Positions 2 to 63,398 are shown, counted from the first letter of the stretch. The stretch is 64,000 nt of DNA from IMGVR_UViG_3300024259_002152:186001-250000; one strand, 5' to 3'. Numbers and translations are program-made. Notes: generated from the sequence alone by a model not told the origin.

Positions 2-115
2 TCAATAAAGATTAGGTCGAAGGGTGACGAGTTGGTTAGAGCTTTTACTGTTATCAGGGGAGAAGATTTTAAAAAGGTTATAGAACCATTCATAAAGGTG
101 CGAAATGATATTTAA
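2..115 (+). CDS. 3' end of an upstream gene (partial, unidentified)
   Basis: Frame 2 is open from the window edge (SIKIRSKGDELVRAF...KVRNDI*) to TAA at 113-115 and overlaps the neuC start. Not in the ORF track. Confidence 0.5.
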   Translation, partial: SIKIRSKGDELVRAFTVIRGEDFKKVIEPFIKVRNDI

Positions 116-14231: not shown

Positions 14232-15335
14232 ATGCGATATTCAGTAATAGGTGAAGACTTAGTACCATTAATAGGGCAGGGAGGATCTATTATAGGAGAA
14301 GATCCATCTATTAATTACGATAGGATTCTTAAAACTGGGATAGATAATGGTCTTACATTTATTGATACGGCAGAAGTTTATACGGGGGGAGAATCGGAAA
14401 AAATTATAGGTAGAGCTATCAGTAAATGTAGAGAAAAAGTTTTCATTTGTACTAAAGTCTCTCCAAATCATCTACTATTTAACGACATTATCTCTTCTGC
14501 CGATAATAGTTTAAGAAGACTTAATATTGATACTATTGATTTGTACAAAATTCATTGGCCTAATAATCTTTTGTGTCCCGATGATATATTAAGAGCATTT
14601 GATGATCTCCACAGACATGGCAAGGTAAGATATTTTGGGGTGAGTAATTTTTTACCAATGGATTTTGAGAAATTCAACACTAAAGATACTCGTTTCGGTT
14701 CATTCGTATCCAATCAGATAGAATATAATTTATTTGATCGCTTTGCAGAAATAGGGATAATTCCATATTTTAAAAATAAAGATGTTAAAATAATTGCTTA
14801 TTCTCCTTTAAATAGGGGAAATATTTGTTCCGATAGCGAAGAGATATTAAAAGAACTATCTGCAAAATACCATAAGACGCCAGCCCAAATATCACTAAAT
14901 TGGCTGGCATCTCATGATATTATTTCTGTTCCTTTTTCTTCTAATATAGATCATATAGTAGAGAATGCTACATCTTGTGATTTTGAAATTGATGAACAAG
15001 ATATGGATTTAATTAATAAAGAAGTAAAGGGAAAATTGTTATTTAAAAAAGTATCTGAGATTCAAGTTGCTAAAAACGGTTTTGGAGGTCATAAGGTATA
15101 TAATACAAAGGAAGAGGCATTAGAAAATAGATATAATTTTTGTCCCAGTCCTAGGGATATATCAGATTATTTATTGTCTTTAAGTCGAGAAGAATTGAAT
15201 TATATTAAACCAGTTAGAGTTATGGATGAGAATGGAGTTTTGAATCTTATAGAAGGAAGAGTAAGATATTGGGGATGGAATATAGCTTTTGGAGATGATA
15301 TTCTCCTCCCCGTTTATATTGTAAAGAAAGGTTAA
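14232..15335 (+). CDS. Aldo/keto reductase with a ~100-aa C-terminal extension
   Basis: FIDTAEVY, TKVSP, IDLYKIHWP, GKVRYFGVSNF, NQIEYNL, AYSPL; the extension contains LIEGRVRYW. Confidence 0.85.
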   Translation: MRYSVIGEDLVPLIGQGGSIIGEDPSINYDRILKTGIDNGLTFIDTAEVYTGGESEKIIGRAISKCREKVFICTKVSPNHLLFNDIISSADNSLRRLNIDTIDLYKIHWPNNLLCPDDILRAFDDLHRHGKVRYFGVSNFLPMDFEKFNTKDTRFGSFVSNQIEYNLFDRFAEIGIIPYFKNKDVKIIAYSPLNRGNICSDSEEILKELSAKYHKTPAQISLNWLASHDIISVPFSSNIDHIVENATSCDFEIDEQDMDLINKEVKGKLLFKKVSEIQVAKNGFGGHKVYNTKEEALENRYNFCPSPRDISDYLLSLSREELNYIKPVRVMDENGVLNLIEGRVRYWGWNIAFGDDILLPVYIVKKG

Positions 15336-24520: not shown

Positions 24521-25360
24521 ATGCATTTAAACAGGAAGAAAATCAAACAAAATAAATTGAAGATTTCTCCTAGGGGAGGGAAAAAAAAGAAGATAAAAAT
24601 AGCTGATCCAAAACCAGTTGTTAGACCCGTCAAAAGATCTAAAAAGAAAAATAAACAATTAAGAATTAGTAAGACATCTGGTTTAAATAGTATAGATATT
24701 AAGAATTTTGGGGATAAGTCACTTTATAAACCAATTCGTGAATGGAAAAGCTTATTAGAAGGACAAGCAGCTTTTATATTGGGGAATGCTCCCAGCATAA
24801 CGAGACAGAATCTAGATATTTTGAATCCGTATTTTACGATAGGTGTTAATAGGATATTATATATTTTTACTCCGACTATATTGATTTGGCAAGATATTCA
24901 GATGTGGAATAGCGAAAAGAAAAAAATAGCTAATAATAAATCGTTAAAAATATGTAATAGCGTTAGTGATCCTCGTAAGGCATTTCTAAATTTTAAAGTT
25001 AAGGGTGGAAATTTTAAATTCGGGAATGATCCTTCCATATTGCATGGTACAGGGAATACTACAGCTTTAGCAGCTCAACTAGCTGTTAATTTAGGTTGTT
25101 CGGATATAATTTTATTAGGAACAGATTGTCAATATCAATCTGGAAAAACAGATTTTTATGGCAAGAATAAAGATCATAAATCATATACGTTAAAAATGTG
25201 TAACGTGGCTATGGAGTGGATGAGAGACAATTGTCCTATTCCTGTACATAATTGTAGTAAGAATAAGCTCTGGCCTGAAGAAAATATAGTAGATGTTATA
25301 AAAAAATTAGGCCCTAAGAAACTAAATAGAAAAGAATATATTAGAAAGTTTAAACGATAA
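24521..25360 (+). CDS. DUF115/MAF_flag10-like protein with Lys/Arg-rich N-terminus
   Basis: FILGNAPSI, TIGVNR, GNTTALAAQLAVNLGCSDIILLGTDCQY. Confidence 0.7.
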   Translation: MHLNRKKIKQNKLKISPRGGKKKKIKIADPKPVVRPVKRSKKKNKQLRISKTSGLNSIDIKNFGDKSLYKPIREWKSLLEGQAAFILGNAPSITRQNLDILNPYFTIGVNRILYIFTPTILIWQDIQMWNSEKKKIANNKSLKICNSVSDPRKAFLNFKVKGGNFKFGNDPSILHGTGNTTALAAQLAVNLGCSDIILLGTDCQYQSGKTDFYGKNKDHKSYTLKMCNVAMEWMRDNCPIPVHNCSKNKLWPEENIVDVIKKLGPKKLNRKEYIRKFKR

Positions 25361-46034: not shown

Positions 46035-48548
46035 GTGAATAAAGATTTTATCTTATCGGTTTTGAAGAAAGTGAGATTTTTGTTTCCTTTCGTGGTGGAC
46101 TCACCTCATGAGGTTCTTGGGGAGTTGGCGCAAATAATTCCATCTCGATATATGATATTTCCTTGTGATATTATAGATCTTAGACAGTTTATTAGAGAGG
46201 ATAAGATTTCATCTTCGAATCCTATACTGTTTTTTTCTCAAAAATTTGCAGATAAATATTTGAAAGAATATTCAGTGTTTTTAGTTCTTGACTCTCATGT
46301 AGATGTTGTGAATGATCTATACGGAGGTGTTCAAGTTAATTATTGCGATGAACTCCCTTTGTCTCATCTACTTGTTAGAATCCTTATTAACGAACCATCT
46401 GCAAATAACTCTTTCGATGTTGTTAAAAACTTAATGGAAGAATTTAATTTAGGGGTAGAATGTTTGGTATCAAATAGTGTTCCTGGTATTTCTGGTCCTA
46501 GCAAAAAATTGTCATATATAATAGAACCTAAAAAGGCACAAAGAACTATAGGTGTTCCTTCAGACCTCCCTCTTACTCCAAAAGAAAACGATATATTTGA
46601 GTTCTTGAGACAAGTTAAAAAAGATTACAATCTTGATATTCAAATGAGGGTGGCAGGAGGATGGGTCAGAGATAAGATTCTTGGTAAAGAAAGTGATGAT
46701 ATAGATATAGCTGTAGATATGCCAGGTTATGATTTTGCTAAATTGGTGGCCCAAGCTGCCTTTAAGAGCAATATATCTCATGACCCTAAAGCGTATAATG
46801 TTAGTTTAGACAAAGATGCAGACCCAGCCACGAGAGTTGATGATGACAATCTGATGGTAGGGGCTGTAGATTTATTTGGTCAGAAAATAGAATTTGTTCC
46901 AATGAGAACAGAGCACTATCCTGATCCTCAAAGCAGAAAACCTAAAATTACCACAACGAATGATCCAAGAGAAGATGTGAAAAGAAGAGATCTTACAATC
47001 AATTCTATTTATTATAATATAGATACTGGTCAAGTAGATGATTTTGTAGGAGGAGTAGAGGATTTAGGTTTGGAAAGCGGAAAAATGATATTAAGAACAC
47101 CAGATGATGCCAAAAAAACTTATGAAGAAGATCCATTAAGGTTGCTGAGAGCTTTGCGCTTTCATAGTCGTTATCCCAATAGCGAATTAGATCCAGATAT
47201 AATCAAATCAATGTCAGACCCAGACATACAAGAATCTTATGTCAAGAAAGTTGCTGCGTCAAGAGCTGGACCTGAGATAATGAAAATGTTAGTGGGGGAT
47301 AATCCTACTGCATCTTTAAAACTATTATTTGAGAGCGGTTTATATAGGAAAGTTTTTGATGTTCCTGCAATGGGGAATATTAATCCTGATGGTATAGAGA
47401 TGGATCAAAAATCTCCTTATCACAAATATAGTTTATTAGATCATACGATAGAAGTGGTGTCTAATCTTAATAGTATTATGAAAGAGAATGAAGAGCCCGA
47501 TGATATGAGAGGACTTATGAATCTTGCTGCTGTTTTTCATGATTTCGGAAAAATGGATAACAAAGTTGCAAGACCTCATAAACGTCCAAGAGTTCCTGGA
47601 CATACTACTTATGTTGGGCACGAAAGAAGCTCAGAAGATATGGCAGAAGCCATATTGAAATCTATTAACGTGCCAAAAGAAAAAAGAAATTTAGTTAATA
47701 CTGTTATTAAAACACATATGTATCCTCATGATGCTTCGGATTGGAGTAGTAAAAATAAAGGTCCAGGTAATTTTATTGAAAAATTAAAAATAAAAGGCAA
47801 AGGTGGAGTAGATGATTTGTGGAAGTATGTGTTTTATCATGGTCAAGCTGATGCCATGTCGTCTAATCCTGAGACATATGATGAGCAAAAATATAATCAA
47901 GGAAAAGAGTGGTTTGAGCAATATCGTTCTGAACCATCGACAGAATTTACCAGATTTCAAGGAACGTTAATAGATGGTAACGTAGTGGATAATCTCAGGC
48001 AGCAAATAGAGCAGCAGAGACAAGTTCGTATCAGAAAAAACATTATCAGTGATGCTTTACATTTTATTTTACAACAGCAATATACAGGTAATATTGATAT
48101 GTCTTTTGCTTCATTGCCAGAAGGAGCAGATAGAGAGAAAGCTATGAATAAGTCTATTAATGATGCTACTAATAAAGTCAAAGGGTGGATGCTTAATGTG
48201 CATAATAAATATTTAGAACCACCTAAGGGAGGACAGGTTATGGGGTCTAATTGGTTTAAAAAAGTAAAAACTGCACAAGTAGCTGCTCTATCAGGAGATG
48301 TGCAAACTCAAGATCCAGAGATAAAGAAAGGTCCAAAAGAAGCTCTTCCAAAATATCAAGTTGGTATGAAGGTAAGAGATAGAAGAAATTCTGTATCTCA
48401 ACAACAGACCTATGGGGTGGTAGAAGCAATAAAAGGTAATAAAATGAAGATAGTTTGGAATCCTGATAGTAAAGAAAAAAGACAAGAAGAAGTTGTCGAT
48501 ATGGTGGAAAATACTGAAATTTTATCTTTAATTGTTGCGGAGGTATAA
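46035..48548 (+). CDS. cca: Class II CCA tRNA nucleotidyltransferase with HD domain and N- and C-terminal extensions
   Basis: RVAGGWVRD...DDIDIA, EFVPMRTE, DVKRRDLTINS, EDPLRLLRALRF, LLDHT, FHDFGK, YVGHE. Confidence 0.9.
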   Translation: MNKDFILSVLKKVRFLFPFVVDSPHEVLGELAQIIPSRYMIFPCDIIDLRQFIREDKISSSNPILFFSQKFADKYLKEYSVFLVLDSHVDVVNDLYGGVQVNYCDELPLSHLLVRILINEPSANNSFDVVKNLMEEFNLGVECLVSNSVPGISGPSKKLSYIIEPKKAQRTIGVPSDLPLTPKENDIFEFLRQVKKDYNLDIQMRVAGGWVRDKILGKESDDIDIAVDMPGYDFAKLVAQAAFKSNISHDPKAYNVSLDKDADPATRVDDDNLMVGAVDLFGQKIEFVPMRTEHYPDPQSRKPKITTTNDPREDVKRRDLTINSIYYNIDTGQVDDFVGGVEDLGLESGKMILRTPDDAKKTYEEDPLRLLRALRFHSRYPNSELDPDIIKSMSDPDIQESYVKKVAASRAGPEIMKMLVGDNPTASLKLLFESGLYRKVFDVPAMGNINPDGIEMDQKSPYHKYSLLDHTIEVVSNLNSIMKENEEPDDMRGLMNLAAVFHDFGKMDNKVARPHKRPRVPGHTTYVGHERSSEDMAEAILKSINVPKEKRNLVNTVIKTHMYPHDASDWSSKNKGPGNFIEKLKIKGKGGVDDLWKYVFYHGQADAMSSNPETYDEQKYNQGKEWFEQYRSEPSTEFTRFQGTLIDGNVVDNLRQQIEQQRQVRIRKNIISDALHFILQQQYTGNIDMSFASLPEGADREKAMNKSINDATNKVKGWMLNVHNKYLEPPKGGQVMGSNWFKKVKTAQVAALSGDVQTQDPEIKKGPKEALPKYQVGMKVRDRRNSVSQQQTYGVVEAIKGNKMKIVWNPDSKEKRQEEVVDMVENTEILSLIVAEV

Positions 48549-48549
48549 A

Positions 48550-49440
48550 ATGTTACAGGTTGGTTATGGAGGTTATTATTTGGTAGGGGGCAACGTAACA
48601 GAATATGTCGATTCTCCGACATATTATGAGCCTGGTTTTAATGTTATGTACCCAATAGAAATAGCCGCTCCTAAGTCAGATCGTTTTTTCATTCTTATCA
48701 GGAAAAGAGAAGATGAGTCGGGAGATGGTTTTGCCAATTTGGTTGCTACAAATGTTTCAGCGACAGCAGTTGACGCCACTAATGGAGAAAGTCTATTAGT
48801 AAGGACTTCTAATAACACTTTACATCCCGCTTGGAATCAAGATCCATCTTCTACTACTCCTGTTCTCCTACAGATAGATAATCAGTTGGACATGGTTAAT
48901 ACTATTTTAAGAGTAAGAGTAATTGATTGTAAAGTGAAAGATTCGACAGATAATAGTTTTATCAATTTTAGAGTGATTATAGAAGAAGATCCTGAAGATT
49001 TATATTTCAATTATATTCCTGTGCATAGGAGAATATATCCCGATAGAAATACTTTTAGTATTGCTGGTAGGTCAGCATATGTAACATTAAGAAATGATAG
49101 CGATGCTTATTTATTAGTGTCCCCCTATGCTTGGTTAAAGGAAGACACAAAGGATAAGTCAGATTTTTCTTATCCTCAAGATACATTTTATTATCAAATA
49201 GAGAATACTTACAATAGCGAAGACTTTACATTTGCATTATCAAGTTATAGTGATTCTTTTGTGGCTGAACATGTGTCTGTGTTAAATGTCCCAGGGAACA
49301 AAAAAGTAGCTCTTATTTTAATAGATAATGCTATTTATGATTATATATTTCAGTTGAGAAGTGGCGTAAGTTTAGTAATATCTGTTGTGGGAGAACTTAG
49401 TGGTATAGAAGATACGTTTACGGTCAACCTTAATGTATAG
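48550..49440 (+). CDS. Beta-rich hypothetical protein (possibly structural)
   Basis: GGAGG SD before ATG 48550; aromatic, Asn/Thr-rich composition. Confidence 0.55.
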   Translation: MLQVGYGGYYLVGGNVTEYVDSPTYYEPGFNVMYPIEIAAPKSDRFFILIRKREDESGDGFANLVATNVSATAVDATNGESLLVRTSNNTLHPAWNQDPSSTTPVLLQIDNQLDMVNTILRVRVIDCKVKDSTDNSFINFRVIIEEDPEDLYFNYIPVHRRIYPDRNTFSIAGRSAYVTLRNDSDAYLLVSPYAWLKEDTKDKSDFSYPQDTFYYQIENTYNSEDFTFALSSYSDSFVAEHVSVLNVPGNKKVALILIDNAIYDYIFQLRSGVSLVISVVGELSGIEDTFTVNLNV

Positions 49441-49449
49441 GAGCGGGTA

Positions 49450-49962
49450 ATGGGATGGTTTAAAGAGTCACAAAATGAAAATTTTATAGAAAAAGTAAAG
49501 GATATTTTAAAAAAACATTCTTTCACTAACGCAATATCTAACTACTATCATATTCCCATTAGTGAAGTCGATACTCATCTAGAAATAGAGGTGTGTGATC
49601 TTCATGGGAAATTTGCAGAAGGAAATGGTAAATTAATAAGAATAGATAAAAAGTTGTTAGATAATGACTTCTTTGATGAAAATTTTCACTTTGTGATCCA
49701 CGAATTTTTCCATTGGTTGAAGAGAAGGTCAGAAAATAAATTTTACTTCAACGATCCAGAAGAAGTCCAAAGTTTTGTTTTGCAGATGGCTTGGAATTTG
49801 ATAAATGGGAAAAGCGAAGAAGAAGTAACTAGAAAGATTTATCCCATCATTAAGGCTCATTTTAAAGATCAAAATAAATTTGAAGATGTATTTACAGAAA
49901 TGTTAAATAAAGCAATTAATCTCTATCAGATTTATCAGAGAGGGGGAGAATTTTCGATTTAA
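49450..49962 (+). CDS. Putative zincin metallopeptidase with N-terminal MGWFKESQ motif
   Basis: VIHEFFHW (HExxH) with downstream DPEEVQSF. Confidence 0.65.
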   Translation: MGWFKESQNENFIEKVKDILKKHSFTNAISNYYHIPISEVDTHLEIEVCDLHGKFAEGNGKLIRIDKKLLDNDFFDENFHFVIHEFFHWLKRRSENKFYFNDPEEVQSFVLQMAWNLINGKSEEEVTRKIYPIIKAHFKDQNKFEDVFTEMLNKAINLYQIYQRGGEFSI

Positions 49963-50721: not shown

Positions 50722-52296
50722 ATGGCTTTTGACAGATATGTAGAGGGGTTTGATCAGTGCGAGCCTCCTGTATGTCCTGAAGATATAGTTATAACTATTA
50801 TCAGTGTTAGTTGCACAGAAGACAAGATGCTGCATGTAGAATGGTTGGTTACCGATAAATATAATAGAGATATTAATGGTAACTATTTAGCATGGTCTTG
50901 TGATAATCAGGATTTAGATACTACTGTTTTTCCTTCCATAGGTCCTACTTCTTATGTCTCTTATTTTGATATCTCTAGCTGTATGGGGATTATTTATTTT
51001 AAAATAAAGGTAAGAATTGGAACTACTTTTTTTGAGGGGGATTTAGAAGCGTTCGATACAGCACTATGTACGTCAAGCGATACAGCAGTTCCAGCATCAT
51101 GGTGCGGGGATTGTCCTGATGGAGTTTCTACACCTCCTCCATATCTACTGTATGTGATATCATCTACTGTTCCTTCATATCCTACATATTTTGACTATGC
51201 AGGGTTATGCTGGTATGTAGATGATAATGAGAATGAAATTTCTATAAGGGATTTGCCAGAAGGAGCTATTTTAACTGGAGCAAGTGAAATATATTCATCT
51301 TGTGAAGACTGTTGCTTACAATTAGATTGTCCTAGTCCTTGGGTAGAATTGCCAGCAGATATTCAAGCATTTGCGGGAGAAAAGGTGGGAGTCTTTTATT
51401 TTGAATATCAGACTTATGATGTTGCAGATCAGTTATTCGTTATTAGGAACTTTTTTGAGCCAGATGATTGTCTCACTGATGATGATGGAAATCTTTTACC
51501 TCCCCCTGATAATAAGATACTATTTGATACGGGTTGTGTGAGTACTAATTTACAGGATTGTCCATCTTTTTTCGTAGATGATCCCCTCTGTATGGATTTT
51601 GCTGCTGCTACTTATGGTTTTTGTGTTAGGGTTAGGGAGGGAGAGTTACCAATAGGTATTCTTAATGTTTGTAATTGTAATGATACCGAAGGCACTTATT
51701 GGAGAATATGTAGTATAGATCCTGATCGCAACATTTCTAATTGGGAAGGTGGAGATGAATGTTTATGCACGGATATGAGTTCTTCAAGCAGTTCTAGCTT
51801 AAGTAGTTCAAGTAGTTCAAGTTCAAGTTCAAGTTCAAGTAGTTCTAGTTCTAGTAGTTCTAGTTCTAGTTCTAGTAGCTCTAGTTCTAGTAGTTCTAGT
51901 TCTAGTTCTAGTTCTAGTTCTAGTTCTAGTAGTTCTAGTAGTTCTAGTAGTTCTAGTTCTAGCAGTTCTAGTTCTAGTAGTTCTAGTAGTTCTAGTAGTT
52001 CAAGTAGTTCAAGTAGTTCTAGTAGTTCTAGTAGTTCAAGTTCAAGTAGTTCTAGCAGTTCGAGTTTAAGTAGTTCGAGTAGCTCTCAAAACTTATGGTA
52101 TCATGCGGCTACAGGATGGACGGGGTCAGGATGCACAGGTATACCTGCTGGTTTGGTGCTCATCTGTCTTCCATCAGGTGTTGCGAATGGAAGATGTTAT
52201 AATGGAAGCTTCTCGGGTCTTCCGAGCGGATGCACAACCCTCGGACCAACAACTCCGTGCTCTGCAATAGATGGGACATATACTGGACCTTGTTAG
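50722..52296 (+). CDS. Cys-rich protein with poly-Ser tract and unique C-terminal tip (paralogue A1)
   Basis: MAFDRYVEGFDQCEPPVCP N-terminus; ~350-aa conserved Cys-rich region; Ser tract; ~70-aa Cys/Gly/Thr tip. Confidence 0.8.
   Translation: MAFDRYVEGFDQCEPPVCPEDIVITIISVSCTEDKMLHVEWLVTDKYNRDINGNYLAWSCDNQDLDTTVFPSIGPTSYVSYFDISSCMGIIYFKIKVRIGTTFFEGDLEAFDTALCTSSDTAVPASWCGDCPDGVSTPPPYLLYVISSTVPSYPTYFDYAGLCWYVDDNENEISIRDLPEGAILTGASEIYSSCEDCCLQLDCPSPWVELPADIQAFAGEKVGVFYFEYQTYDVADQLFVIRNFFEPDDCLTDDDGNLLPPPDNKILFDTGCVSTNLQDCPSFFVDDPLCMDFAAATYGFCVRVREGELPIGILNVCNCNDTEGTYWRICSIDPDRNISNWEGGDECLCTDMSSSSSSSLSSSSSSSSSSSSSSSSSSSSSSSSSSSSSSSSSSSSSSSSSSSSSSSSSSSSSSSSSSSSSSSSSSSSSSSSSSSSSSSSSSSSSSSSLSSSSSSQNLWYHAATGWTGSGCTGIPAGLVLICLPSGVANGRCYNGSFSGLPSGCTTLGPTTPCSAIDGTYTGPC
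51778..52086 (+). repeat. Poly-Ser coding tract (103 codons: 101 Ser, 2 Leu by hand count)
   Basis: Mosaic of AGT TCT, AGT AGT TCT, AGT TCA and AGT TCG units. Confidence 0.95.
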
Positions 52297-52327
52297 GTGT
52301 AAAAATATTAAATAAGAGAAAAATAAT

Positions 52328-54010
52328 ATGTTAGATTGTCAAGTAATAACAGAAAACGATGATATCTTTATTTGTAAAAAGATGGGAGAAAGAACCCATT
52401 TTAAAGATTTTAAAATACACAAATCTCAATGTGAGCAGTGCGTGAAAGATGAAGAAATAGTGCTAAGACAGTTTGAAAATAATTTTTATTTTAGCTGTTT
52501 GATAAGTGTCGATCAAATAGATAAATTAGAGAATAAAGAAGAGATTATAGAAAATACTTTAGAATATTTTAGGCATTCTGAAAATGATCCAGATTTAGTA
52601 AATAAATTAAAATCTATGTTATTCTATTTTGTTATGAATCCTAGATTTAAATTTGATCCTATGGACAAATTGAGGTTGGAATATATTTTAAATAATATTG
52701 AAAATTTGAATTTATCGGAATCAATGGAAAGTTTTATTAACGATGATGAAAATTTATATAATTTTTATAAAAAGAACTTATTGGATTTAATGAGTAGTAA
52801 TATAGATGTTTTTAAAAATAGTATTAAACAACAATTAGAAATGGTGGTCGTTACAAAAGATTTTGCTATTCGATTTTTTGGGGAAAATAAAGACAAATTT
52901 GATGATGCTTTTTGTGCCGATTTTCATAAGTCTTTAAAAGAGTATGATAATAATATGGGGAGGATGAAGAAAGATCCTAATTTCGTTCCTGTTTTTAAAG
53001 TATCTTTAATAGATAAAATAAAGGGGGCAAAAGAAGCATTTAAAAGAATAGTAAAGAAATCTAAAGAAGAAGGAAAAGATGCTTTATGGATCAGCGAGAA
53101 AAAAATAATAGAAAGGCAAGTTTGTTGTACTACCTGCACGGATGGAGGAAGTTGTCCTTATTGTGGTTGCCAGATAAAGAAATCATGGTTTTTACCGCTA
53201 GGAAAATCAGAATTGTCAACTGAGGGCTGTCCCAATCTCAATACTTATCCCCATCTTAAAATCTTTCCCTCAAAAAATTATTGGGAAGTGTGTGAAGAAA
53301 AAACTTCTGTGATTATAGTCGCAAGAAATGAAGAAAATTTGAATAAAACTCTTGGAAGTCTTATTGCTAATGCAACAGGAGAAATAGAAATATTAGTTGG
53401 ATTAGATGGGTGCAGATATGATGTTATAAATAATGAAAAAGTTGCTACTTTACAATTTAATCAACATATAGGTAGGAGAAAAATATCTAATCAATTAGTT
53501 AAGTTGGCTACTGGGAAATACTTATTTGAAGTTGATGCTCATTGTGCTGTTTCTTATGGGTGGGATACTAGGTTAAAATGTGTGTGTGATGATAATATTA
53601 TTGTCGGATGTTCTGTTAATTCTATCGATGAAAAATTATGGGGATGTGATGAGGATATTAAATGGGTGGGAGGGAAAATAATAGAAGATGCAAAATGGAA
53701 ATGGGATAAAATTGATAATAATGTTGAGAAGATAGAAGAGGTAGAGAGTTTTAATGCTTGCGGATGGATGATAAGAAAAGATTATTTTGAAAAATTAGAT
53801 GGTCATGATGAAGATCTTGGAGAATGGGGATGGGAGAATGTTGAGTGGACATTAAAGAATAAATCTAATAGTGGTAGAATTATTATAAGAACAGATGTTA
53901 TAGTATCACATCTGTTTCGGAAACAGTATCCCTATGAAATAAAAGGATTAAAGTATAATGATGTAATACAAATATTAAAAAATAAAGACATTTACAAACA
54001 GGGTGTCTAA
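52328..54010 (+). CDS. Glycosyltransferase with polypeptide-GalNAc-transferase-like GT-A domain and Cys-cluster N-terminal region
   Basis: TSVIIVARNE, DAHC (DxH), WGWENVE, SHLFRK; upstream CCTTC...CPYCGC...GCP cluster. Confidence 0.78.
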   Translation: MLDCQVITENDDIFICKKMGERTHFKDFKIHKSQCEQCVKDEEIVLRQFENNFYFSCLISVDQIDKLENKEEIIENTLEYFRHSENDPDLVNKLKSMLFYFVMNPRFKFDPMDKLRLEYILNNIENLNLSESMESFINDDENLYNFYKKNLLDLMSSNIDVFKNSIKQQLEMVVVTKDFAIRFFGENKDKFDDAFCADFHKSLKEYDNNMGRMKKDPNFVPVFKVSLIDKIKGAKEAFKRIVKKSKEEGKDALWISEKKIIERQVCCTTCTDGGSCPYCGCQIKKSWFLPLGKSELSTEGCPNLNTYPHLKIFPSKNYWEVCEEKTSVIIVARNEENLNKTLGSLIANATGEIEILVGLDGCRYDVINNEKVATLQFNQHIGRRKISNQLVKLATGKYLFEVDAHCAVSYGWDTRLKCVCDDNIIVGCSVNSIDEKLWGCDEDIKWVGGKIIEDAKWKWDKIDNNVEKIEEVESFNACGWMIRKDYFEKLDGHDEDLGEWGWENVEWTLKNKSNSGRIIIRTDVIVSHLFRKQYPYEIKGLKYNDVIQILKNKDIYKQGV

Positions 54011-55839
54011 TGGCTTTTGACAGATATGTAGAGGGGTTTGATCAGTGCGAGCCTCCTGTATGTCCAACGGATATAACGATTGAGATTATTAATGTTGTGT
54101 GTGTATCTAATACTTTATATGTTACATGGAGTATTGTAGATAATACCAGCCAGAATTTACTAGATAATCTTAATTCCAATGATCTGCTATGGTCTTGTGA
54201 TAATCAAGATTTTGATAATATTGTTTCTCCTGGATACTCTTCTACCAATATTTATACTGTTTCTTTTGATGTTTCCACTTGTGATGGAGTCATTTATTTA
54301 AAAGTAAAAGCAAAAATAGTTACTACTTTTTTTGAAAGTGGTATAGAAACATTTGATACATCGGGATGTATTGATGTTAGTAATCTAGCAGTTCCTGCAA
54401 TTTGGTGTGGAGATTGTCCTGATATAGTTTCTACTCCTCCTCCATATTTATTATATGTGAGATCTTCTACTGTCCCTTCGTACCCTACATATTTTGATTA
54501 CGGAGGTTTATGCTGGTATGTAAATAGCAGTAATAATGAGATTATGATAGAAGATTTACCAGTAGGGGCCATTTTGACTGGAGCAAGTGAAATATATTCA
54601 TCTTGTGAAGACTGTTGCTTACAATTAGATTGTCCTAGTCCTTGGGTAGAATTACCATCAGACATTCAAGCATTTAATGGAGAAAAGGTAGGAGTCTTTT
54701 ATTTTGAATATAAAACTTATCTCGTTGCTGATAGAATATATGTAGTTAGAAATTTTGATCCAGATGATTGTGATGCAGAAGGACCTTGGACTCCTCCGTC
54801 TGAAAAAATATTATTTGATACAGGTTGTGTAAGTACTAGTGCAGGTCCTTGTCCATCTTTTTTTGTAAGTGATCATTTGTGTTTAAGTTATGGTTCTTCT
54901 ACTTATGGTTTTTGCGTTCGGGTTAGGGAGAGCGAGTTACCTATAGGTCTTGTTAATGATTGTAACTGTAATGATGAGACTACAGATACTAATTGGGAAA
55001 TATGTAGTGTAGATCCTGATGGTGTTATCTCTAATTGGGAAGGTGGGAACGATTGTTTGTGTGAAGATGCCATGTCTTCCAGTAGTTCAAGTTCAAGTAT
55101 AAGCTCAAGCAGTTCAAGCAGTTCAAGTAGTTCAAGCAGTTCAAGTAGTTCAAGTTTGAGTAGCTCGAGTAGTTCTAGCTCGAGTAGTTCTAGTTCAAGC
55201 AGTTCTAGTTCAAGTAGTTCTAGTTCAAGCAGTTCTAGTTCAAGTAGCTCTAGTTCAAGTAGCTCTAGTTCTAGTAGCTCTAGTTCAAGTAGTTCTAGTT
55301 CAAGTAGTTCGAGTTCGAGTAGTTCGAGTTCGAGTAGTTCGAGTTCGAGTAGTTCGAGTTCGAGTAGTTTTAGTAGTTCGAGTTCAAGTAGTTCGAGTTC
55401 AAGTAGTTCGAGTTCAAGTAGTTCGAGTAGCTTAAGTTCGAGTAGTTCGAGTTCAAGTAGTTCGAGTAGCTCAAGTTCGAGTAGCTCAAGTCACGCTGCT
55501 GAGGGTTGTCCCGCTACGTGTGGAGATTGTAGCGAAACTTATAATGTAGAAATAACAGGTTTTACTACTAGTCCTGAGCATAATATTTCTACCACCGTTA
55601 CACGAATTAGTGGATGTCAATGGATAACTGCTGGGATGGGTTTCGGAATGGCAGGAGCAGCTATTGAATGTGCTGGAGGAGTATGGGTAGTGCGTGAATA
55701 TTATTTATTCCCATATGTAATGGCTATAATTCCATCTGGTACAGAACCTCTCGCTTATACTAATGATTGCCCTACTACTAATTCTCCATATAACTTACTA
55801 AGTGCCATAGGAGATACTGGGATAGCAACGGTATCTTAA
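54010..55839 (+). CDS. Cys-rich protein with poly-Ser tract and unique C-terminal tip (paralogue A2)
   Basis: First 56 nt identical to A1; same Cys framework; different ~115-aa tip. Confidence 0.8.
   Translation: MAFDRYVEGFDQCEPPVCPTDITIEIINVVCVSNTLYVTWSIVDNTSQNLLDNLNSNDLLWSCDNQDFDNIVSPGYSSTNIYTVSFDVSTCDGVIYLKVKAKIVTTFFESGIETFDTSGCIDVSNLAVPAIWCGDCPDIVSTPPPYLLYVRSSTVPSYPTYFDYGGLCWYVNSSNNEIMIEDLPVGAILTGASEIYSSCEDCCLQLDCPSPWVELPSDIQAFNGEKVGVFYFEYKTYLVADRIYVVRNFDPDDCDAEGPWTPPSEKILFDTGCVSTSAGPCPSFFVSDHLCLSYGSSTYGFCVRVRESELPIGLVNDCNCNDETTDTNWEICSVDPDGVISNWEGGNDCLCEDAMSSSSSSSSISSSSSSSSSSSSSSSSSSLSSSSSSSSSSSSSSSSSSSSSSSSSSSSSSSSSSSSSSSSSSSSSSSSSSSSSSSSSSSSSSSSSSSSSSFSSSSSSSSSSSSSSSSSSSSLSSSSSSSSSSSSSSSSSSSHAAEGCPATCGDCSETYNVEITGFTTSPEHNISTTVTRISGCQWITAGMGFGMAGAAIECAGGVWVVREYYLFPYVMAIIPSGTEPLAYTNDCPTTNSPYNLLSAIGDTGIATVS
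55075..55491 (+). repeat. Poly-Ser coding tract (139 codons, 135 Ser by hand count)
   Basis: AGT/AGC-TCN mosaic with I, L, F, L interruptions. Confidence 0.95.
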
Positions 55840-55880
55840 AAGATAAAAAGGAAAAATTGTACAAAATGAGGAACAAAAAT

Positions 55881-55920
55881 ATGTTAGACTGTTAAATAAA
55901 AACAGAAAATGGTAATATTT
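55881..55920 (+). pseudogene. 5' remnant of a second copy of the glycosyltransferase gene
   Basis: ATGTTAGACTGTTAAATAAAAACAGAAAATGGTAATATTT vs 52328 ATGTTAGATTGTCAAGTAATAACAGAAAACGATGATATCT: 32/40 identical, MLDC*IKTENGNI vs MLDCQVITENDDI. Confidence 0.65.
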
Positions 55921-55946
55921 GAGAAATAAAAAAGGAACAAAATATT

Positions 55947-56996
55947 ATGACTTTTAATAGATATACAGAAGGATTTGATCAATGCGGACCGCCATCATGT
56001 CCTGAGGATGTGATAGTAGAAATTACAAATAAGACATGCACTAATGATAACACATTGCATATAGAATGGACTGTCGTAGACAGGTATAACAGAAATCTAG
56101 ATCTAAATTCTGTTTTATGGTCTTGTGATAATCAGAATTTTAATAATACTTCTTACCCAGAAAATGATTTTCAGCCATATGAAACTTCTTTTGATGTTTC
56201 TAGTTGTGAAGGTATTATTTATTTAAAAGCAAAGGTAAGAATTGGTACAACTCTTATAGAAAGTAAGGTAGAAACATGCGATACGGCTTTGTGTGATACA
56301 ATTAGTAATCTAGCAGTTCCTGCAATTTGGTGTGGAGATTGTCCTGATACTGTTTCTAATCCTCCTTTATACTTATTGTATGTGAGATCTATGACTGTCC
56401 CTTCATATCCTGCATATTTTGATTACGGAGGGTTTTGCTGGCATTTAACTAATGATAATAACGAGGTATCTACGGATGATTTACCAGAAGGGGCTATTTT
56501 AACTGATATAGATACCTCTTATCTATATTGCAATGATTGTTGTTTAAAATTAGATTGTCCCAGTTCGTGGGTGGAGTTGTCGGCTGATGCCCAAGAAACC
56601 CCAGGAGAAAGGGTGGGAGTTTTTTACTTTGAATATCAAACGACTATTTGTCCTGATAGATTTTATGTTATTAAGAATTTTGTGGATAGTGATTGCACTG
56701 CTGCGGGGGCATGGACTCCAGAGTCAGATAAAATATTATTTGATACGGGTTGTATCGCAACTAGTTTAGAAGAGGGTCCATCATTTTTTGCTGGTAATCA
56801 TTTATGTTTAGATTATGGAGAGCCCACATATGGTTTTTGTTTAACTGTTAGAGAGGGAGATTTACCTATAGGTATTGTTAATGATTGCGATTGTTCAGAT
56901 AATTGCAATACTACTTGGAAAATATGTAGTGTAGATCCTGATGGTAGCATTCTTAATTGGGAAGGTAGTAATGAATGTCTATGTGAGGAAATTTAG
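55947..56996 (+). CDS. Cys-rich paralogue A3 lacking the Ser tract and tip
   Basis: MTFNRYTEGFDQCGPPSCP; 25 Cys by hand count; ends CLCEEI* exactly where A1/A2 enter poly-Ser. Confidence 0.8.
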   Translation: MTFNRYTEGFDQCGPPSCPEDVIVEITNKTCTNDNTLHIEWTVVDRYNRNLDLNSVLWSCDNQNFNNTSYPENDFQPYETSFDVSSCEGIIYLKAKVRIGTTLIESKVETCDTALCDTISNLAVPAIWCGDCPDTVSNPPLYLLYVRSMTVPSYPAYFDYGGFCWHLTNDNNEVSTDDLPEGAILTDIDTSYLYCNDCCLKLDCPSSWVELSADAQETPGERVGVFYFEYQTTICPDRFYVIKNFVDSDCTAAGAWTPESDKILFDTGCIATSLEEGPSFFAGNHLCLDYGEPTYGFCLTVREGDLPIGIVNDCDCSDNCNTTWKICSVDPDGSILNWEGSNECLCEEI

Positions 56997-57019: not shown

Positions 57020-57385
57020 ATGGAGTATCAAACAATGACGTTTAAAAATATATGTAAAAATTATTTTGATAGGAATAAAAAATATCTGCTATCAGATCAC
57101 ATTATTTACGAGATGAATGGGGCTGTGTTATGTAAGACAAGCAATGCTATTTTTGATTTTCATGAAATAGCAATAAAAAATATTATAGATTATTGCAAAG
57201 AGGCAGGATATGAAAAAATAGATAAAGTAGTTTTTGTTTCTTCTTATGATGTAGATATTGTTGAAGATGCTCCCAAATTACAACTAAAAATGCAAGCTGA
57301 TTCTAAAATAAGTATAATAAAAGAAAATGACAGATTTATAGCAATGGTTTGTATTGGAGAATGGGTGGAGATTAATGAAAAATAA
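57020..57385 (+). CDS. Hypothetical protein
   Basis: 121-aa ORF. Confidence 0.55.
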   Translation: MEYQTMTFKNICKNYFDRNKKYLLSDHIIYEMNGAVLCKTSNAIFDFHEIAIKNIIDYCKEAGYEKIDKVVFVSSYDVDIVEDAPKLQLKMQADSKISIIKENDRFIAMVCIGEWVEINEK

Positions 57386-59459
57386 TATAAAACAGAGTAT
57401 ATTCTTAGTGGGTTTTTTAATCATTTTTATTTCTTTTGTGCTGTCATGGAGGGTATTGACTTATAAAAAACTAGAAAATACTATTGTATTGAATACTCAA
57501 GAGAGGCTAGTGACTGTCGTTGAATCGGAATCAGTAATTATCAGTCAATTGATAAATAATTATTTTGTAGAGGACGATTGGTTGGCATTTATGAATGATT
57601 TCAATGGGAGAACGGGAAAAATAGGAAAAGATGGATATATGTGGATAATAGATGATAAGGGAATAGTAAAATATCATCCATATCAACAATACATCGGTAA
57701 AAGTGCAATTATTTTAAGAAGGAATATATTGGATGATGGAGGTTGTAAGAATTTTGAAGATATTATTGGTAGAATGAAAAGAGGAGAAAAAGGATATGGA
57801 GATTATACATCTATTTGGAGCAATAAAGATCAAAAAAAAGTGAAAAAAATAGTAGCATTTTGCCCTCTTGAAGTAAATAAAAACAAATGGTCGATTGCTG
57901 TTTCTATTGGTTATGTGGAGATCTCGTCTCCTATAGTCATAAATAAATATATGGATATTTTCGGCGTAATTGTTATATTTATTTTTACTTGTATTGTGGG
58001 TTATATTTTTTATAAGAAACAAAAGAAAATAGATGAAACAAGTATATTTGTTCAAACAGAACACGAGTTAAGGGAAAGTAAAGATTTTATAAGAAGAGTT
58101 ATTGATACTATTCCTCTTTTAGTTTTTGTAAAAGATTATGAGGGACATTACATATTAGCTAATCAAACATTGGCAGACATGCTAGGCGTAACAGTAGAAA
58201 AAATAGAGGGGAAAAAAGACATCGATTTCATGGGTAGCACTGAGGTTGAGGAAGCAAATCGGTATACAGATGCAGATAAAAAAGTCATTACAACTCAGGA
58301 AGAGATGCATATTTATGAAGAAAAATCTACGGACTCTAAGGGCAATATCGTATATTTTAACACAATAAAATATCCTTTAACTATTGGGGAGAAATCTGAT
58401 TACGTTCTAGGAGTATCTACTAATATCACAGAAAGAAAAATGGCAGAAGAGAAAATAGAGTCTTTGGCAAAATTTCCAGGAGAAAATAGCAATCCAGTGT
58501 TGAGAATAGATCATGATGGCAAACTTATTTATGCTAATAATGCTAGTGAAGCTTTATTAGAACTATGGGGTAGTAACGTGGGAGGATATGTGCCATCATC
58601 TTTTACTCATATAATAAAAGAGTGTTTGTTAGAGCATATAGTAAAAACTAAAGATATAAAAATTAATGGTAATATTTTGACATTGAGTTTCACTCCTATC
58701 CGTGATGATTATATTAATATTTATGGATCAGATATCACAGACATAAAAGCAGCAGAAGAAGAATTGAGAAAAGCAAACGAGGGGTTAGAGGAATTTGCTT
58801 ATATTACTTCTCATGATTTACAAGAACCATTAAGAACTGTTTTTGCATATTCTCAGTTATTGAAAAATTCTTGTTACGATAGATTGAGTGAAGAAGAACA
58901 AAAATTTCTTAACTATTTAATGAGCGGCAGCCAACGGATGAAGATACTTGTAAAAGAGTTGCTTGATTACTCAAGAGTTGGGAAAAGTCGAGATGCATCA
59001 GGAATTGAAAGAGTGAATATAGGGATGTTATTGGATGAGATCTTTGAAGACTCTCAAGTATATATTAAAGAAACAAATGCTATTATTACTGTTCAAAAAC
59101 ATATGCCTACAATTATTGGTTCTCGTTTGAGAATAAAACAGTTATTTCATAATCTAATTAGTAATGCATTGAAATTTAGAGGACAACAACAACCTATCAT
59201 AAAAATAGGTTATCGCGAGTTAGATGATGCAAATTATTGGGAGTTTTATGTTGAAGATAATGGGATAGGAATTGATCCTCAATTTCATGATCGTATTTTT
59301 GGTATTTTTAAAAGGTTGTATTCTAGAGAAGAATATCCTGGAACAGGTATAGGATTAGCTTTGTGTAAAAAGATTGTAGAAACTCATGCAGGTGATATAT
59401 GGGTAGAGTCTGAAGCGAATAAAGGGACTATAATCTATTTTACAATTGCTAAATCATAA
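57375..59459 (+). CDS. Membrane sensor histidine kinase (TM-Cache-TM-PAS-PAS-HisKA-HATPase)
   Basis: Two hydrophobic segments; GYMWIIDDKGIVKYHP; EEFAYITSHDLQEPLR; NLISNALKF; DNGIGID; GTGIGLALCKKIV. Confidence 0.92.
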   Translation: MKNNIKQSIFLVGFLIIFISFVLSWRVLTYKKLENTIVLNTQERLVTVVESESVIISQLINNYFVEDDWLAFMNDFNGRTGKIGKDGYMWIIDDKGIVKYHPYQQYIGKSAIILRRNILDDGGCKNFEDIIGRMKRGEKGYGDYTSIWSNKDQKKVKKIVAFCPLEVNKNKWSIAVSIGYVEISSPIVINKYMDIFGVIVIFIFTCIVGYIFYKKQKKIDETSIFVQTEHELRESKDFIRRVIDTIPLLVFVKDYEGHYILANQTLADMLGVTVEKIEGKKDIDFMGSTEVEEANRYTDADKKVITTQEEMHIYEEKSTDSKGNIVYFNTIKYPLTIGEKSDYVLGVSTNITERKMAEEKIESLAKFPGENSNPVLRIDHDGKLIYANNASEALLELWGSNVGGYVPSSFTHIIKECLLEHIVKTKDIKINGNILTLSFTPIRDDYINIYGSDITDIKAAEEELRKANEGLEEFAYITSHDLQEPLRTVFAYSQLLKNSCYDRLSEEEQKFLNYLMSGSQRMKILVKELLDYSRVGKSRDASGIERVNIGMLLDEIFEDSQVYIKETNAIITVQKHMPTIIGSRLRIKQLFHNLISNALKFRGQQQPIIKIGYRELDDANYWEFYVEDNGIGIDPQFHDRIFGIFKRLYSREEYPGTGIGLALCKKIVETHAGDIWVESEANKGTIIYFTIAKS

Positions 59460-59625: not shown

Positions 59626-60243
59626 ATGAAAAAAAACAAGGCGGAATTAGTGTTTATTGTGGACCGTTCCGGCTCCATGATGTCAATTGCTTCTGATATG
59701 CAGGGAGCAATCAAGTCAGTTCTATCAGACCAAAAGAAAAACCTCAAAGGTGATATAAATGTGACCTTTGTACGTTTTGACTCTGAATACGAGGAAGTAT
59801 TCAGTGGTCGATCTATCAATGATGTTTCTGAAACGGATTTAGAAATTAATCCAAGAGGAATGACATCTTTGTTGGATGCAATGGGAAAAACTCTTAATAC
59901 TTTTGAAAGAAGATTTTCTGAAACAGATGAGAAGAATAGGCCTAAGAGGGTTTTATTCCTTATTATTACTGATGGACAAGAAAATAATAGCAAAGAGTAT
60001 TCGAGAGATAAAGTTTTTGGCATGATTAAAACTTTGGAAAGAGATCACGAATGGGGATTTACTTTTATTGGTGCTAACCAAGATGCTATTTCTGAAGGTA
60101 GTAGTATTGGTGTAGCAAGAGGAAAATCTCTTAATTATGCAGCTTCGACGAAGGGAGTTAGGTGTATGGCACGATCTGTTAGTAATTTTACAGCAGATTA
60201 TCTTGAGAGTGGTGATGCAAGTTACTCTGACGGTGATGAGTAA
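59626..60243 (+). CDS. von Willebrand factor A domain protein
   Basis: VDRSGSM (DxSxS MIDAS), PRGMTSLLDA, ITDGQENNSKEY, FTFIGANQDA. Confidence 0.9.
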   Translation: MKKNKAELVFIVDRSGSMMSIASDMQGAIKSVLSDQKKNLKGDINVTFVRFDSEYEEVFSGRSINDVSETDLEINPRGMTSLLDAMGKTLNTFERRFSETDEKNRPKRVLFLIITDGQENNSKEYSRDKVFGMIKTLERDHEWGFTFIGANQDAISEGSSIGVARGKSLNYAASTKGVRCMARSVSNFTADYLESGDASYSDGDE

Positions 60244-62494: not shown

Positions 62495-62537
62495 AAAGGG
62501 ACTATTTTTTACATAATGTGGGAATAGTCCCTTTTAT
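62495..62537. terminator. Bidirectional terminator between convergent genes
   Basis: AAAGGGACTATT (62495-62506) / AATAGTCCCTTT (62523-62534). Confidence 0.72.
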
Positions 62538-62947
62538 ATTGATACAGATTTTAAAGTTGCAAAAGTTAAAGCTCTTGAGAGATCTTTTGTTTGTATTTCA
62601 TCTTTGATAAGATAGTCTTTGATACCTAGTAGCCATGCTTTTCTACCAACGGAGTAATCTTCTAATCCTGTTAAGACAATAACTGGTGTGTTCTGGTTGT
62701 GTTTTTCTAGGTGCTCTAATGTAGTTTCTACTGTTTCTATCCCATCTGTTTCGGGCAATCCTAAGTCAAGGATGATAGCATCGAAAGTAGTCGAGGCCAT
62801 TTTTTTAAGTCCATCTTGTAGGCAATTTGATTCATCACAAACCATTACTCTTCCGTTCATTTGTTTAAGATGATTAATGATTAGATCTCTATCTTCTTTA
62901 CTGTCATCTATTATTAATATCTTCATTTTACTCAATGTCCTTTCCAT
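62534..62947 (-). CDS. Stand-alone response regulator receiver domain
   Basis: ILIIDDSKED, ILDLGLPETDG, PVIVLTG, DYLIK. Confidence 0.88.
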   Translation of the reverse strand: MERTLSKMKILIIDDSKEDRDLIINHLKQMNGRVMVCDESNCLQDGLKKMASTTFDAIILDLGLPETDGIETVETTLEHLEKHNQNTPVIVLTGLEDYSVGRKAWLLGIKDYLIKDEIQTKDLSRALTFATLKSVSI

Positions 62948-63398
62948 CTATAAAGCAAAAATTGTTATTATTGGGCAATTCATTTGATTTAAACCAATAC
63001 TTTCCTATAAGACCAACTTTATCATATAACTCTTGAATATCAAAAGTTTTAGTGATATATGAGTTGGCATGTAATTTGTATGTTTCTTCTATGTCAGGAG
63101 GAAAATCAGAAGTGGTGAATATAATAACTGGTATTACTTTATAGGCGTCATCAGTTTTAATAATTTTTAATATTTCTTTGCCATTAATATTTGGTATATT
63201 TATATCTAAAATAATGATATGGGGAGTTGGAGCAGACTCAAAGTTGCCTTTTTTATAGAGAAAATTTAAAGCATCGCTTCCATTACTAATATTTATCACA
63301 TCTAATGAAAGATTTGGGATCTTAGATAGAGCTTGTCTAAGTAGCTCAAAATCGGCTTCATTATCCTCTATAGATAATATTGTAAATCTCTTAGCCAT
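62928..63398 (-). CDS. Stand-alone Rcp1-type response regulator
   Basis: IEDNEAD, ILDINIPNINGKEIL, IPVIIFTTS...DIEETYKLHANSYITK. Confidence 0.92.
   Translation of the reverse strand: MAKRFTILSIEDNEADFELLRQALSKIPNLSLDVINISNGSDALNFLYKKGNFESAPTPHIIILDINIPNINGKEILKIIKTDDAYKVIPVIIFTTSDFPPDIEETYKLHANSYITKTFDIQELYDKVGLIGKYWFKSNELPNNNNFCFIDGKDIE

Follow-up and report, generated by a model that had tools for sequence, protein, structure and literature searches.

A candidate phage protein O-glycosylation cassette with a GT27-like glycosyltransferase between poly-serine proteins

Mucin-type O-glycosylation is treated as a eukaryotic invention, and a locus in a phage contig raises the question of whether a prokaryotic virus may modify its own proteins in a similar manner. 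The locus lies in IMGVR_UViG_3300024259_002152:186001-250000, a stretch of 64,000 nucleotides (nt; hereafter the window) that is part of a 350,866-bp IMG/VR phage contig with 32% GC and genes almost all on a single strand. At positions 50,722 to 56,996 a glycosyltransferase (GT) gene is flanked by genes for two proteins with long serine tracts, A1 and A2, the latter followed by a paralog, A3 (Table 1). The first-pass annotation, made from the sequence alone, had read this arrangement as a dedicated enzyme-substrate cassette, which our analysis partly supports. With a probability of roughly 0.6, we favor a phage cassette for protein O-glycosylation in the host cytoplasm, where the GT would modify the Ser tracts of A1 and A2.

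What kind of enzyme is the GT? The four motifs that had drawn attention to its open reading frame (ORF), TSVIIVARNE, DAHC (D403/H405), WGWENVE (residues 500-506) and SHLFRK (H528), are all present and in the right order. WGWENVE and SHLFR align with WGGENLE and GHVFR of GalNAc-T2, an enzyme in which the metal ligands are the Asp and His of the DxH motif and a C-terminal His. In the phage enzyme D403, H405, E503, E506 and H528 are invariant among the ten closest homologues, and alignments of 56 and 81 family members show little or no variation at the Asp and His of DxH, the last Glu of WGxExxE and the His of xHxFR; the first positions of WGxExxE are degenerate in distant relatives. The catalytic domain (residues ~325-540) is preceded by a Cys-containing helical domain (residues 1 to ~250) and, immediately before it, by a Cys cluster, CCTTCxDGxSCPYCGC (residues 266-281), plus C301. 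As the first-pass annotation had noted, there is no ricin-type (beta-trefoil) lectin domain by Pfam, and the protein stops ~20 residues past the catalytic domain. No transmembrane segment was found in the GT (peak 19-residue hydropathy 1.19). Two related GTs from small phages (L012, 7725-9581; L014, 7677-9683) carry an extra C-terminal region of ~200-250 amino acids (aa) with no Pfam match, possibly a further transferase domain or one for docking.

We placed the enzyme by ranking its matches in PDB, Pfam and BFVD. Pfam returned the broad GT2 family only (E = 8e-6). With the single sequence as query, the glycosyltransferases that phmmer found in PDB at E <= 0.03 were all polypeptide GalNAc-transferases (CAZy GT27; 15 distinct sequences), the family that starts mucin glycosylation in animals. 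A profile of 6 sequences matched GT27 enzymes over the whole catalytic domain (8e-16 to 3e-7), its best match outside GT27 (1.3e-3) being confined to the N-terminal half. With a profile of 81 sequences, the 16 best distinct PDB sequences were all GT27 (4e-26 to 2e-10), among them 8uhv, the GalNAc-T3 of Toxoplasma (PMC11074326), and ordinary GT2 enzymes aligned to only ~80 positions in the nucleotide-binding half. An AlphaFold2 (AF2) model of the catalytic domain built on the 81-sequence alignment was of high confidence (predicted local distance difference test, pLDDT, 90.7; predicted template-modelling score, pTM, 0.90), and in a Foldseek search of PDB its best 50 matches were again all GT27 (E 4e-15 to 2e-12; template-modelling score, TM, 0.57-0.64; identity 17-24%). 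The suggestion that the enzyme resembles GT27 rather than ordinary GT2 transferases is therefore borne out, in that GT27 alone matches the full domain. A full-length AF2 model from 10 sequences was confident for the N-terminal helical domain (~250 aa, found in huge-phage members) with a catalytic domain below pLDDT 50, and a Foldseek search with this model, helical domain included, was uninformative. A match to HfsG (NCBIfam; 22.6 bits against a cut-off of 500) was rejected as local similarity of the kind common among GT-A enzymes.

A DxH in place of DxD is reported to be peculiar to GT27 and GT60, two families with polypeptide Ser/Thr O-glycosylation in common (Taujale et al., PMC7185993); GT60 is reported from prokaryotes and protists (PMC7185993). 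No GT60 structure was among the PDB matches, so PDB alone is unable to separate the two families. The Pfam model of GT60, PF11397, did not match the window GT at E <= 0.1 and matched 4 of 56 relatives (best E = 0.032), and PF02709, a C-terminal model common to GT7 and GT27, matched 21 of the 56. In a viral structure library, proteins of uncultured phages named 'Glycosyltransferase, GlcNAc' scored below the GT27 structures (TM 0.51-0.56, 12-14% identity). These profile tests and the viral structure comparison favor a likeness to GT27 over GT60. Since the lectin domain and membrane anchor of GT27 are missing, we call the enzyme GT27-like and not a GT27 member, and assign it to a putative separate viral clade of the DxH group. 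The same two absences predict a cytoplasmic enzyme.

We then asked whether the proteins encoded on either side of the GT look like substrates. The tract of A1 contains 101 Ser among 104 residues and that of A2 135 Ser among 140, matching the approximate counts of the first-pass annotation, and the ATG of A2 overlaps the stop codon of the GT gene (TAATG). The Ser codons are mixed (AGT, AGC, TCT, TCA and TCG) with no pure trinucleotide run, which argues that the tracts are kept by selection at the protein level. A1, A2 and A3 are 57-68% identical over a common base of ~350 aa, in which more than 20 Cys are conserved, and the C-terminal tips of A1 and A2 are unrelated to one another, so that the description as a conserved Cys-rich base with a variable tip stands. 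Their N-termini are near-identical, with the conserved motif M-x-F-x-R-Y-x-x-G-F-D-Q-C-x-P-P-V-C-P, and the first ~20 residues are strongly conserved even in an otherwise divergent protein from a marine relative (L020). Base-only paralogs like A3 also occur in L002, L011 and L028. A1 had no match in Pfam, PHROG or NCBIfam, and neither the GT nor the A proteins have a signal peptide or membrane segment. In the contig L007, from a different sample, 21.6 kb match the window with zero mismatches and a single 30-nt indel, which falls within the A2 tract (135 Ser in the window, 125 Ser in L007, 11683-13482). This difference between two samples suggests that stalk length is variable, or it may be an assembly artefact.

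The association of GT genes with such tracts extends to other phages. Among plus-strand ORFs of at least 100 aa in 11 related loci, a dense Ser/Thr tract occurred in 9 of 21 ORFs adjacent to a GT and in 0 of 157 others (Fisher p = 7e-10, kinship ignored). In L001, a protein composed of the base, 42 Ser and a Cys-rich tip precedes the GT. A 298-kb contig (L011) has the order C39_2 peptidase, base-only paralog, GT, and base with 56 Ser and a Cys-rich tip; L002 shows the same gene order with an assembly gap at the expected position of the tract. In the marine L020, a 365-aa GT is directly preceded by a gene that opens with the N-terminal motif of the A proteins and whose product is homologous to them over ~110 residues (E = 1e-6) before passing into ~130 residues of TP/SPT repeats.

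In small phages (13-40-kb contigs), the GT is 39-45% identical and directly follows a Cys-rich protein unrelated to the huge-phage one. The tracts of these proteins are T17 in L012, T11 plus (T5A)n in L013, T13 in L014 and ~110 residues of (TP)n in L015. The pair of Ser/Thr protein and GT stands 3-4 genes past the tape-measure and minor-tail genes. We detected no homology between the small-phage tract proteins and the huge-phage base; a weak BLAST match between the base and the gene that precedes those for the small-phage poly-Thr proteins was unconfirmed by profile-profile comparison (probability 0.1) and was set aside. As judged from these sequences, the conserved feature is a tract of hydroxy amino acids and not a particular sequence. 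A tract that switches between Ser, Thr and Thr-Pro within non-homologous flanks is as expected of an acceptor region.

The family is far larger than a word-based search, which found 10 close homologues only, would indicate. An exhaustive profile search gave 2,749 representatives at E <= 1e-3, 150 of which passed E <= 1e-30; the CCTTC (or CCSTC) cluster was present in ~25 of 147 new representatives among the matches listed. Many members are fused to methyltransferase domains of the CmcI type or class 24, and many are annotated automatically as 'glycosyltransferase involved in cell wall biosynthesis'. One fusion of a DxH GT with a CmcI-type methyltransferase (L029, 8001-9410) lies within the structural module of an SU10-like podovirus, two genes upstream of a 989-aa protein with 31% Ser+Thr (11555-14524). 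The best match in the viral structure library was an unnamed UniProt viral protein, A0A516LS96 (E = 1.5e-20), and tblastn queries from three members of the family matched none of 50,697 deposited phage genomes. The only matches in the genome collection were L017 and L018, contigs of metagenome-assembled genomes (MAGs) assigned to Planctomycetota and Pirellulales, whose GT loci are near-identical or related to those of the small phages. L018 and the IMG/VR phage contig of L013 represent almost the same 40-kb element, and this near-identity, together with the MAG assignment, gives a hint at the small-phage host.

Taken together, these features fit a mechanism in which the GT, as a metal-dependent GT-A enzyme of the DxH clade otherwise made up of the eukaryotic polypeptide GalNAc-transferases (GT27) and the polypeptide GlcNAc-transferases (GT60), would transfer a hexosamine-type sugar (by analogy, probably HexNAc) from a UDP-sugar to the hydroxyls of the Ser tracts of co-transcribed A1 and A2. 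In relatives, the equivalent acceptor tracts would be Thr, TP or SPT repeats. Since neither enzyme nor substrates have a signal peptide or membrane segment, modification should take place in the host cytoplasm. Docking of the substrate, for example on the N-terminal motif of the A proteins, would probably fall to the Cys cluster, along with the helical N-terminal domain in huge phages, in place of the lectin domain. The Cys-rich base of ~350 aa would serve as an anchor or oligomerization part, followed by the Ser tract and lastly by the variable tip. Dense glycosylation would then make the tract a stiff, protease-resistant, mucin-like stalk that holds the tip off the particle. Mucin domains usually rise ~2.5 Å per residue, so 101-135 residues, if fully extended and glycosylated, would span roughly 25-35 nm. 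By analogy, a tail or surface fiber is the most likely form of the assembly: the tail-module position in small phages suggests a fiber, and lectin-like or propeller-like tips in relatives suggest binding.

Several observations weigh against this reading. In two loci from the same marine sediment sample, the tract is missing: the base-family proteins on either side of the L026 GT, which is 73% identical to ours, end in a Cys-rich tip in one case and in a propeller-like repeat tip in the other, and both are free of Ser/Thr tracts; L028, likewise tract-less, encodes a C39_2 peptidase, a base-only paralog and a base that carries a ConA-like lectin tip. The upstream protein of the small-phage L016 has a T5 run only. 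The linkage statistic ignores the shared ancestry of the loci. The base domain has no relative in Pfam, PHROG, NCBIfam or PDB sequences, so a virion role rests on analogy, and the huge-phage cassette sits amid replication and regulatory genes rather than structural ones. The Cys richness of the A proteins is unexplained for a cytoplasmic protein; the cysteines might bind zinc or form disulfides after lysis. With tract-less relatives in hand, acceptor sites elsewhere in the A proteins, and tracts that are no more than linkers, become conceivable.

The linkage of GT and poly-Ser genes that the first-pass annotation proposed to check in other large phages thus holds, for Ser/Thr tracts, in most relatives and breaks down in L026 and L028. 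These two loci imply that the constant partner of the GT in huge phages is the base family, with the tract an optional insertion between base and tip. They are compatible with tract glycosylation where a tract exists, acceptor sites elsewhere being possible. The proposed virion fiber or spike fared similarly. The small-phage pair lies in a tail module and the proteins combine a modular base with variable tips, including lectin-like and propeller-like ones, as a fiber would; no PHROG match was found, and the surroundings of the huge-phage cassette do not fit.

If the GT instead glycosylated its Cys-rich neighbors, or other phage proteins, outside the tracts, the tracts would be flexible unglycosylated spacers, as poly-Ser linkers in bacterial carbohydrases are usually taken to be. 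We consider this rather unlikely. The tract-less neighbors of the L026 GT are what such spacers would lead one to expect, as are the conservation of base-only A3 equivalents in every huge-phage relative examined and the co-occurrence of base family and GT wherever the context is readable. Yet dense tracts were found only beside the GT among the 178 ORFs, they recur in mutually non-homologous proteins (the huge-phage base and the small-phage Cys-rich proteins), and the chemistry of the Thr and TP tracts is that generally known to be preferred by the GT27/GT60 clade. The conserved C39_2-like peptidase next to the cassette brings to mind another possibility, that of a system resembling ribosomally synthesized and post-translationally modified peptide (RiPP) or glycocin maturation, in which the GT, joined in marine relatives by a radical-SAM enzyme, would modify the A proteins and the peptidase would cut at their N-terminal motif, yielding adhesins or effectors released or displayed by the infected cell with no part in the virion. 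The peptidase accompanies the cassette in every huge-phage and marine relative, with the radical-SAM gene between GT and peptidase in L004-6 and L019/20; conservation is strong over the first ~20 residues of the A proteins, L020 included; and the cassette is away from recognizable structural genes. However, a double-glycine site is missing from the N-terminal motif, the peptidase carries no fused ABC transporter, nor was any transporter seen nearby, and the A proteins, at 350-600 aa, are not peptides. The small-phage pair belongs to the tail module, where neither a peptidase nor a radical-SAM gene was conspicuous, the family scan not having extended to ORFs past the GT. On balance, we regard such a maturation role as improbable.

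Very unlikely, in our view, is an acceptor that is not a protein at all, either a host envelope polysaccharide or lipid, where the modification would serve superinfection exclusion or seroconversion, or modified phage DNA, with the Ser-rich neighbors incidental. Full-length similarity is limited to polypeptide transferases, the GT has no membrane segment, its adjacency to tract genes is conserved across distant phages (with the stop/start overlap in the window), and a member of the broader family lies inside a phage structural module. That Pfam gives the broad GT2 family only, that relatives are auto-named as cell wall biosynthesis enzymes and fused to sugar O-methyltransferase-like domains, and that the window carries a large nucleotide-sugar cluster with no assigned target are the points that speak for such an acceptor. 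Glycosylation of the tracts by the GT remains the reading that we prefer.

The cassette has conserved company (Table 1). Directly upstream of A1 is the gene for the stand-alone C39_2-like peptidase, whose translation has a Q-x5-C motif near the N-terminus and a HAVV motif; its place beside the cassette is retained in L002, L011 and L028 as well as in the marine L004-6 and L019/20, and the enzyme might act on the A proteins. Just upstream of it, the 170-aa protein carries an HEFFH (HExxH-like) motif and may be a second peptidase. Neither it nor its 302-aa neighbor matched anything in family searches, and whether the two belong to the system is uncertain. The 121-aa protein is always downstream of the cassette in the loci with synteny (112-124 aa in relatives) and likewise found no match in family searches. 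Marine relatives have a small radical-SAM protein with a CxxxCxxC motif and a Cys-rich C-terminus between GT and C39-like peptidase (L004-6 and L019/20; L004 1507-2172, L019 11143-11778, L020 8810-9445 and 9524-10114); L019/L020 have a truncated radical-SAM paralog in addition, and the window is without any such gene at that place.

Table 1. Coordinates of the cassette, its parts and other features of the window.
Feature	Position	Strand	Basis or remark
Nucleotide-sugar cluster, ~25 kb	105 to ~25,400		Pfam
UDP-GlcNAc 2-epimerase	105-1238		PF02350, E = 1e-63
Weak GT-B match	4974-5954		Within the sugar cluster
MptE/Maf-like protein	24521-25360		E = 1.3e-7, below Pfam cut-off
CCA-adding/poly(A) polymerase family enzyme, 837 aa	46035-48548		HD region
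Two conserved upstream genes (302-aa and 170-aa proteins)	48532..49962	+	Synteny in L002, L011, L020
170-aa protein alone	49450-49962		
Stand-alone papain-fold cysteine peptidase, Peptidase_C39_2-like, 238 aa	49993..50709	+	Pfam PF13529, E = 6e-11
A1, 524 aa	50722..52296	+	Translation
A1 base (residues 1-352)	50722-51777		
A1 poly-Ser tract (residues 353-456)	51778-52089		
A1 tip, 68 aa, Cys-containing	52090-52293		
Predicted GT27-like retaining-type GT-A glycosyltransferase, 560 aa	52328..54010	+	Pfam PF00535, PDB searches, AF2/Foldseek
GT Cys cluster and C301	~53123-53230		
GT catalytic domain	53300-53947		
GT DAH	53534-53542		
GT WGWENVE	53825-53845		
GT SHLFR	53906-53920		
A2, 609 aa	54010..55839	+	Translation
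A2 base	54010-55074		
A2 poly-Ser tract (residues 356-495)	55075-55494		
A2 tip, 114 aa	55495-55836		
A3, 349 aa, base-only paralog without Ser tract or tip	55947..56996	+	Translation
Conserved protein, 121 aa	57020..57385	+	Synteny in L001, L002, L004, L011, L020

Farther out, the window has neighbors in the style of huge phages: topoisomerase I, a clamp-loader subunit, a CCA-adding enzyme, thymidylate synthase, a sensor kinase, two response regulators and a vWA protein. The CCA-adding/poly(A) polymerase family enzyme is unusually long and lies upstream of the cassette in all huge-phage relatives. Signaling genes adjoin the cassette (57354-59459, 59626-60243, 62534-63398 (- strand)), encoding the sensor histidine kinase (sCache/PAS/HisKA/HATPase), the vWA protein and the two single-domain response regulators. 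Kinase and regulators recur in L001, L002 and L007, and L011 has kinase-like and vWA-like ORFs; in L019/L020 the regulators are retained with no kinase called. The Pfam lists for the window contain no Sec-type families and no transporter near the cassette. Promoter and terminator scans gave sites no more numerous than in shuffled sequence, and no deposited phage genome matched 24 kb of the window by megablast.

The nucleotide-sugar cluster at the start of the window encodes, besides the epimerase in Table 1, two CTP_transf_3 cytidylyltransferases, two transketolase/E1-like pairs, an aldo-keto reductase, an RmlC-like isomerase, several SDR epimerases/dehydratases, two UDP-glucose-dehydrogenase-like genes and a pair of radical-SAM enzymes, of which one has a B12-binding domain. 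This gene content is suggestive of a route to a branched sugar or to one of the nonulosonic-acid type. Copies of the Maf-like gene were found on two further contigs, that of L011 and one of 219 kb. Maf-type enzymes put nonulosonic acids on Ser/Thr of flagellin, and by this analogy it is conceivable that the cluster feeds the cassette.

How does the cassette compare with known glycosylation systems? With GT27 enzymes (human GalNAc-T1, T2 and T4; Toxoplasma GalNAc-T3), the phage GT has in common the GT-A fold, DxH, the WGxExxE (Gal/GalNAc-T) motif and the His of xHxFR, and the Ser/Thr- and Pro-rich mucin tracts that serve as GT27 acceptors resemble the phage tracts. It differs in its low identity to them, in coming from a prokaryotic virus, in having no beta-trefoil lectin, type II anchor or luminal location, and in its added N-terminal helical domain and CCTTC Cys cluster. 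GT60 enzymes (Dictyostelium Skp1 Gnt1; the mucin ppGlcNAc-transferases of Trypanosoma and Dictyostelium) likewise belong to the DxH clade and O-glycosylate polypeptides on Ser/Thr (or Hyp); they have no lectin domain and some are cytoplasmic, as the soluble phage GT would be; the GT60 Pfam model, however, does not recognize it.

Among bacterial systems, Ser-rich repeat adhesins (GspB, Fap1 and SraP) also have a glycosylated Ser-rich stalk between an anchor and a binding region and an adjacent cytoplasmic O-glycosyltransferase. There, the enzyme is a GtfA/GtfB heterodimer of GT-B (GT4-type) fold, export is by accessory Sec (SecA2/SecY2) and the substrates are dipeptide repeats, whereas the phage cassette has a GT-A DxH enzyme and homopolymer tracts, with no accessory Sec genes seen. 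Glycocin/sublancin RiPP clusters similarly bring together a GT-A enzyme, a C39-type peptidase and Cys-rich substrates; these are a GT2 S/O-glycosyltransferase, a C39 peptidase-ABC exporter and a short precursor with a double-glycine leader, in contrast to phage substrates of 349-609 aa with no GG site in the conserved N-terminus and a 238-aa stand-alone peptidase without a transporter. In mycobacteriophages (Che8 and relatives), phage-encoded GTs are described as decorating the phage's own structural proteins in the cytoplasm to give a glycan coat (Freeman et al. 2023, as cited in PMC11256854). The phage family described here has no sequence similarity to that system by the tblastn search above. 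The mycobacteriophage acceptors are reportedly capsid and tail-tube proteins, not dedicated homopolymer stalks.

The literature that we searched describes no GT27-like enzyme and no homopolymeric Ser/Thr glycosylation substrates in phages, in agreement with the first-pass annotation, which knew of no phage equivalent. With virion glycosylation known from mycobacteriophages and Ser-rich stalks from adhesins, what would be new is a viral DxH clade with a new presumed class of substrate. We tentatively raise the further possibility, which we hold with much less confidence than tract glycosylation itself, that the family is a prokaryotic-virus branch of the GT27/GT60 clade that builds mucin-like glycoprotein virion fibers with adjacent Ser/Thr/TP proteins; such a branch might range from 350-kb phages to ~40-kb siphovirus-like phages on Planctomycetota MAG contigs.

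To our knowledge, glycosylation of phage-particle proteins has so far been shown mainly in mycobacteriophages, by unrelated enzymes. If our reading is true, the cassette would be a viral or prokaryotic counterpart, and possibly the root, of mucin-type O-glycosylation, and would bear on the origin of GT27 and GT60. A soluble GT without a lectin domain next to its presumed substrates would offer a simple model for how the DxH clade recognizes Ser/Thr tracts, and the compact pair of enzyme and tag could serve to make densely O-glycosylated polypeptides in bacteria. For the phages, it would mean a tunable glycan stalk for adhesion or shielding, a bottle-brush whose length could change by repeat slippage, as the 10-Ser difference in A2 suggests.

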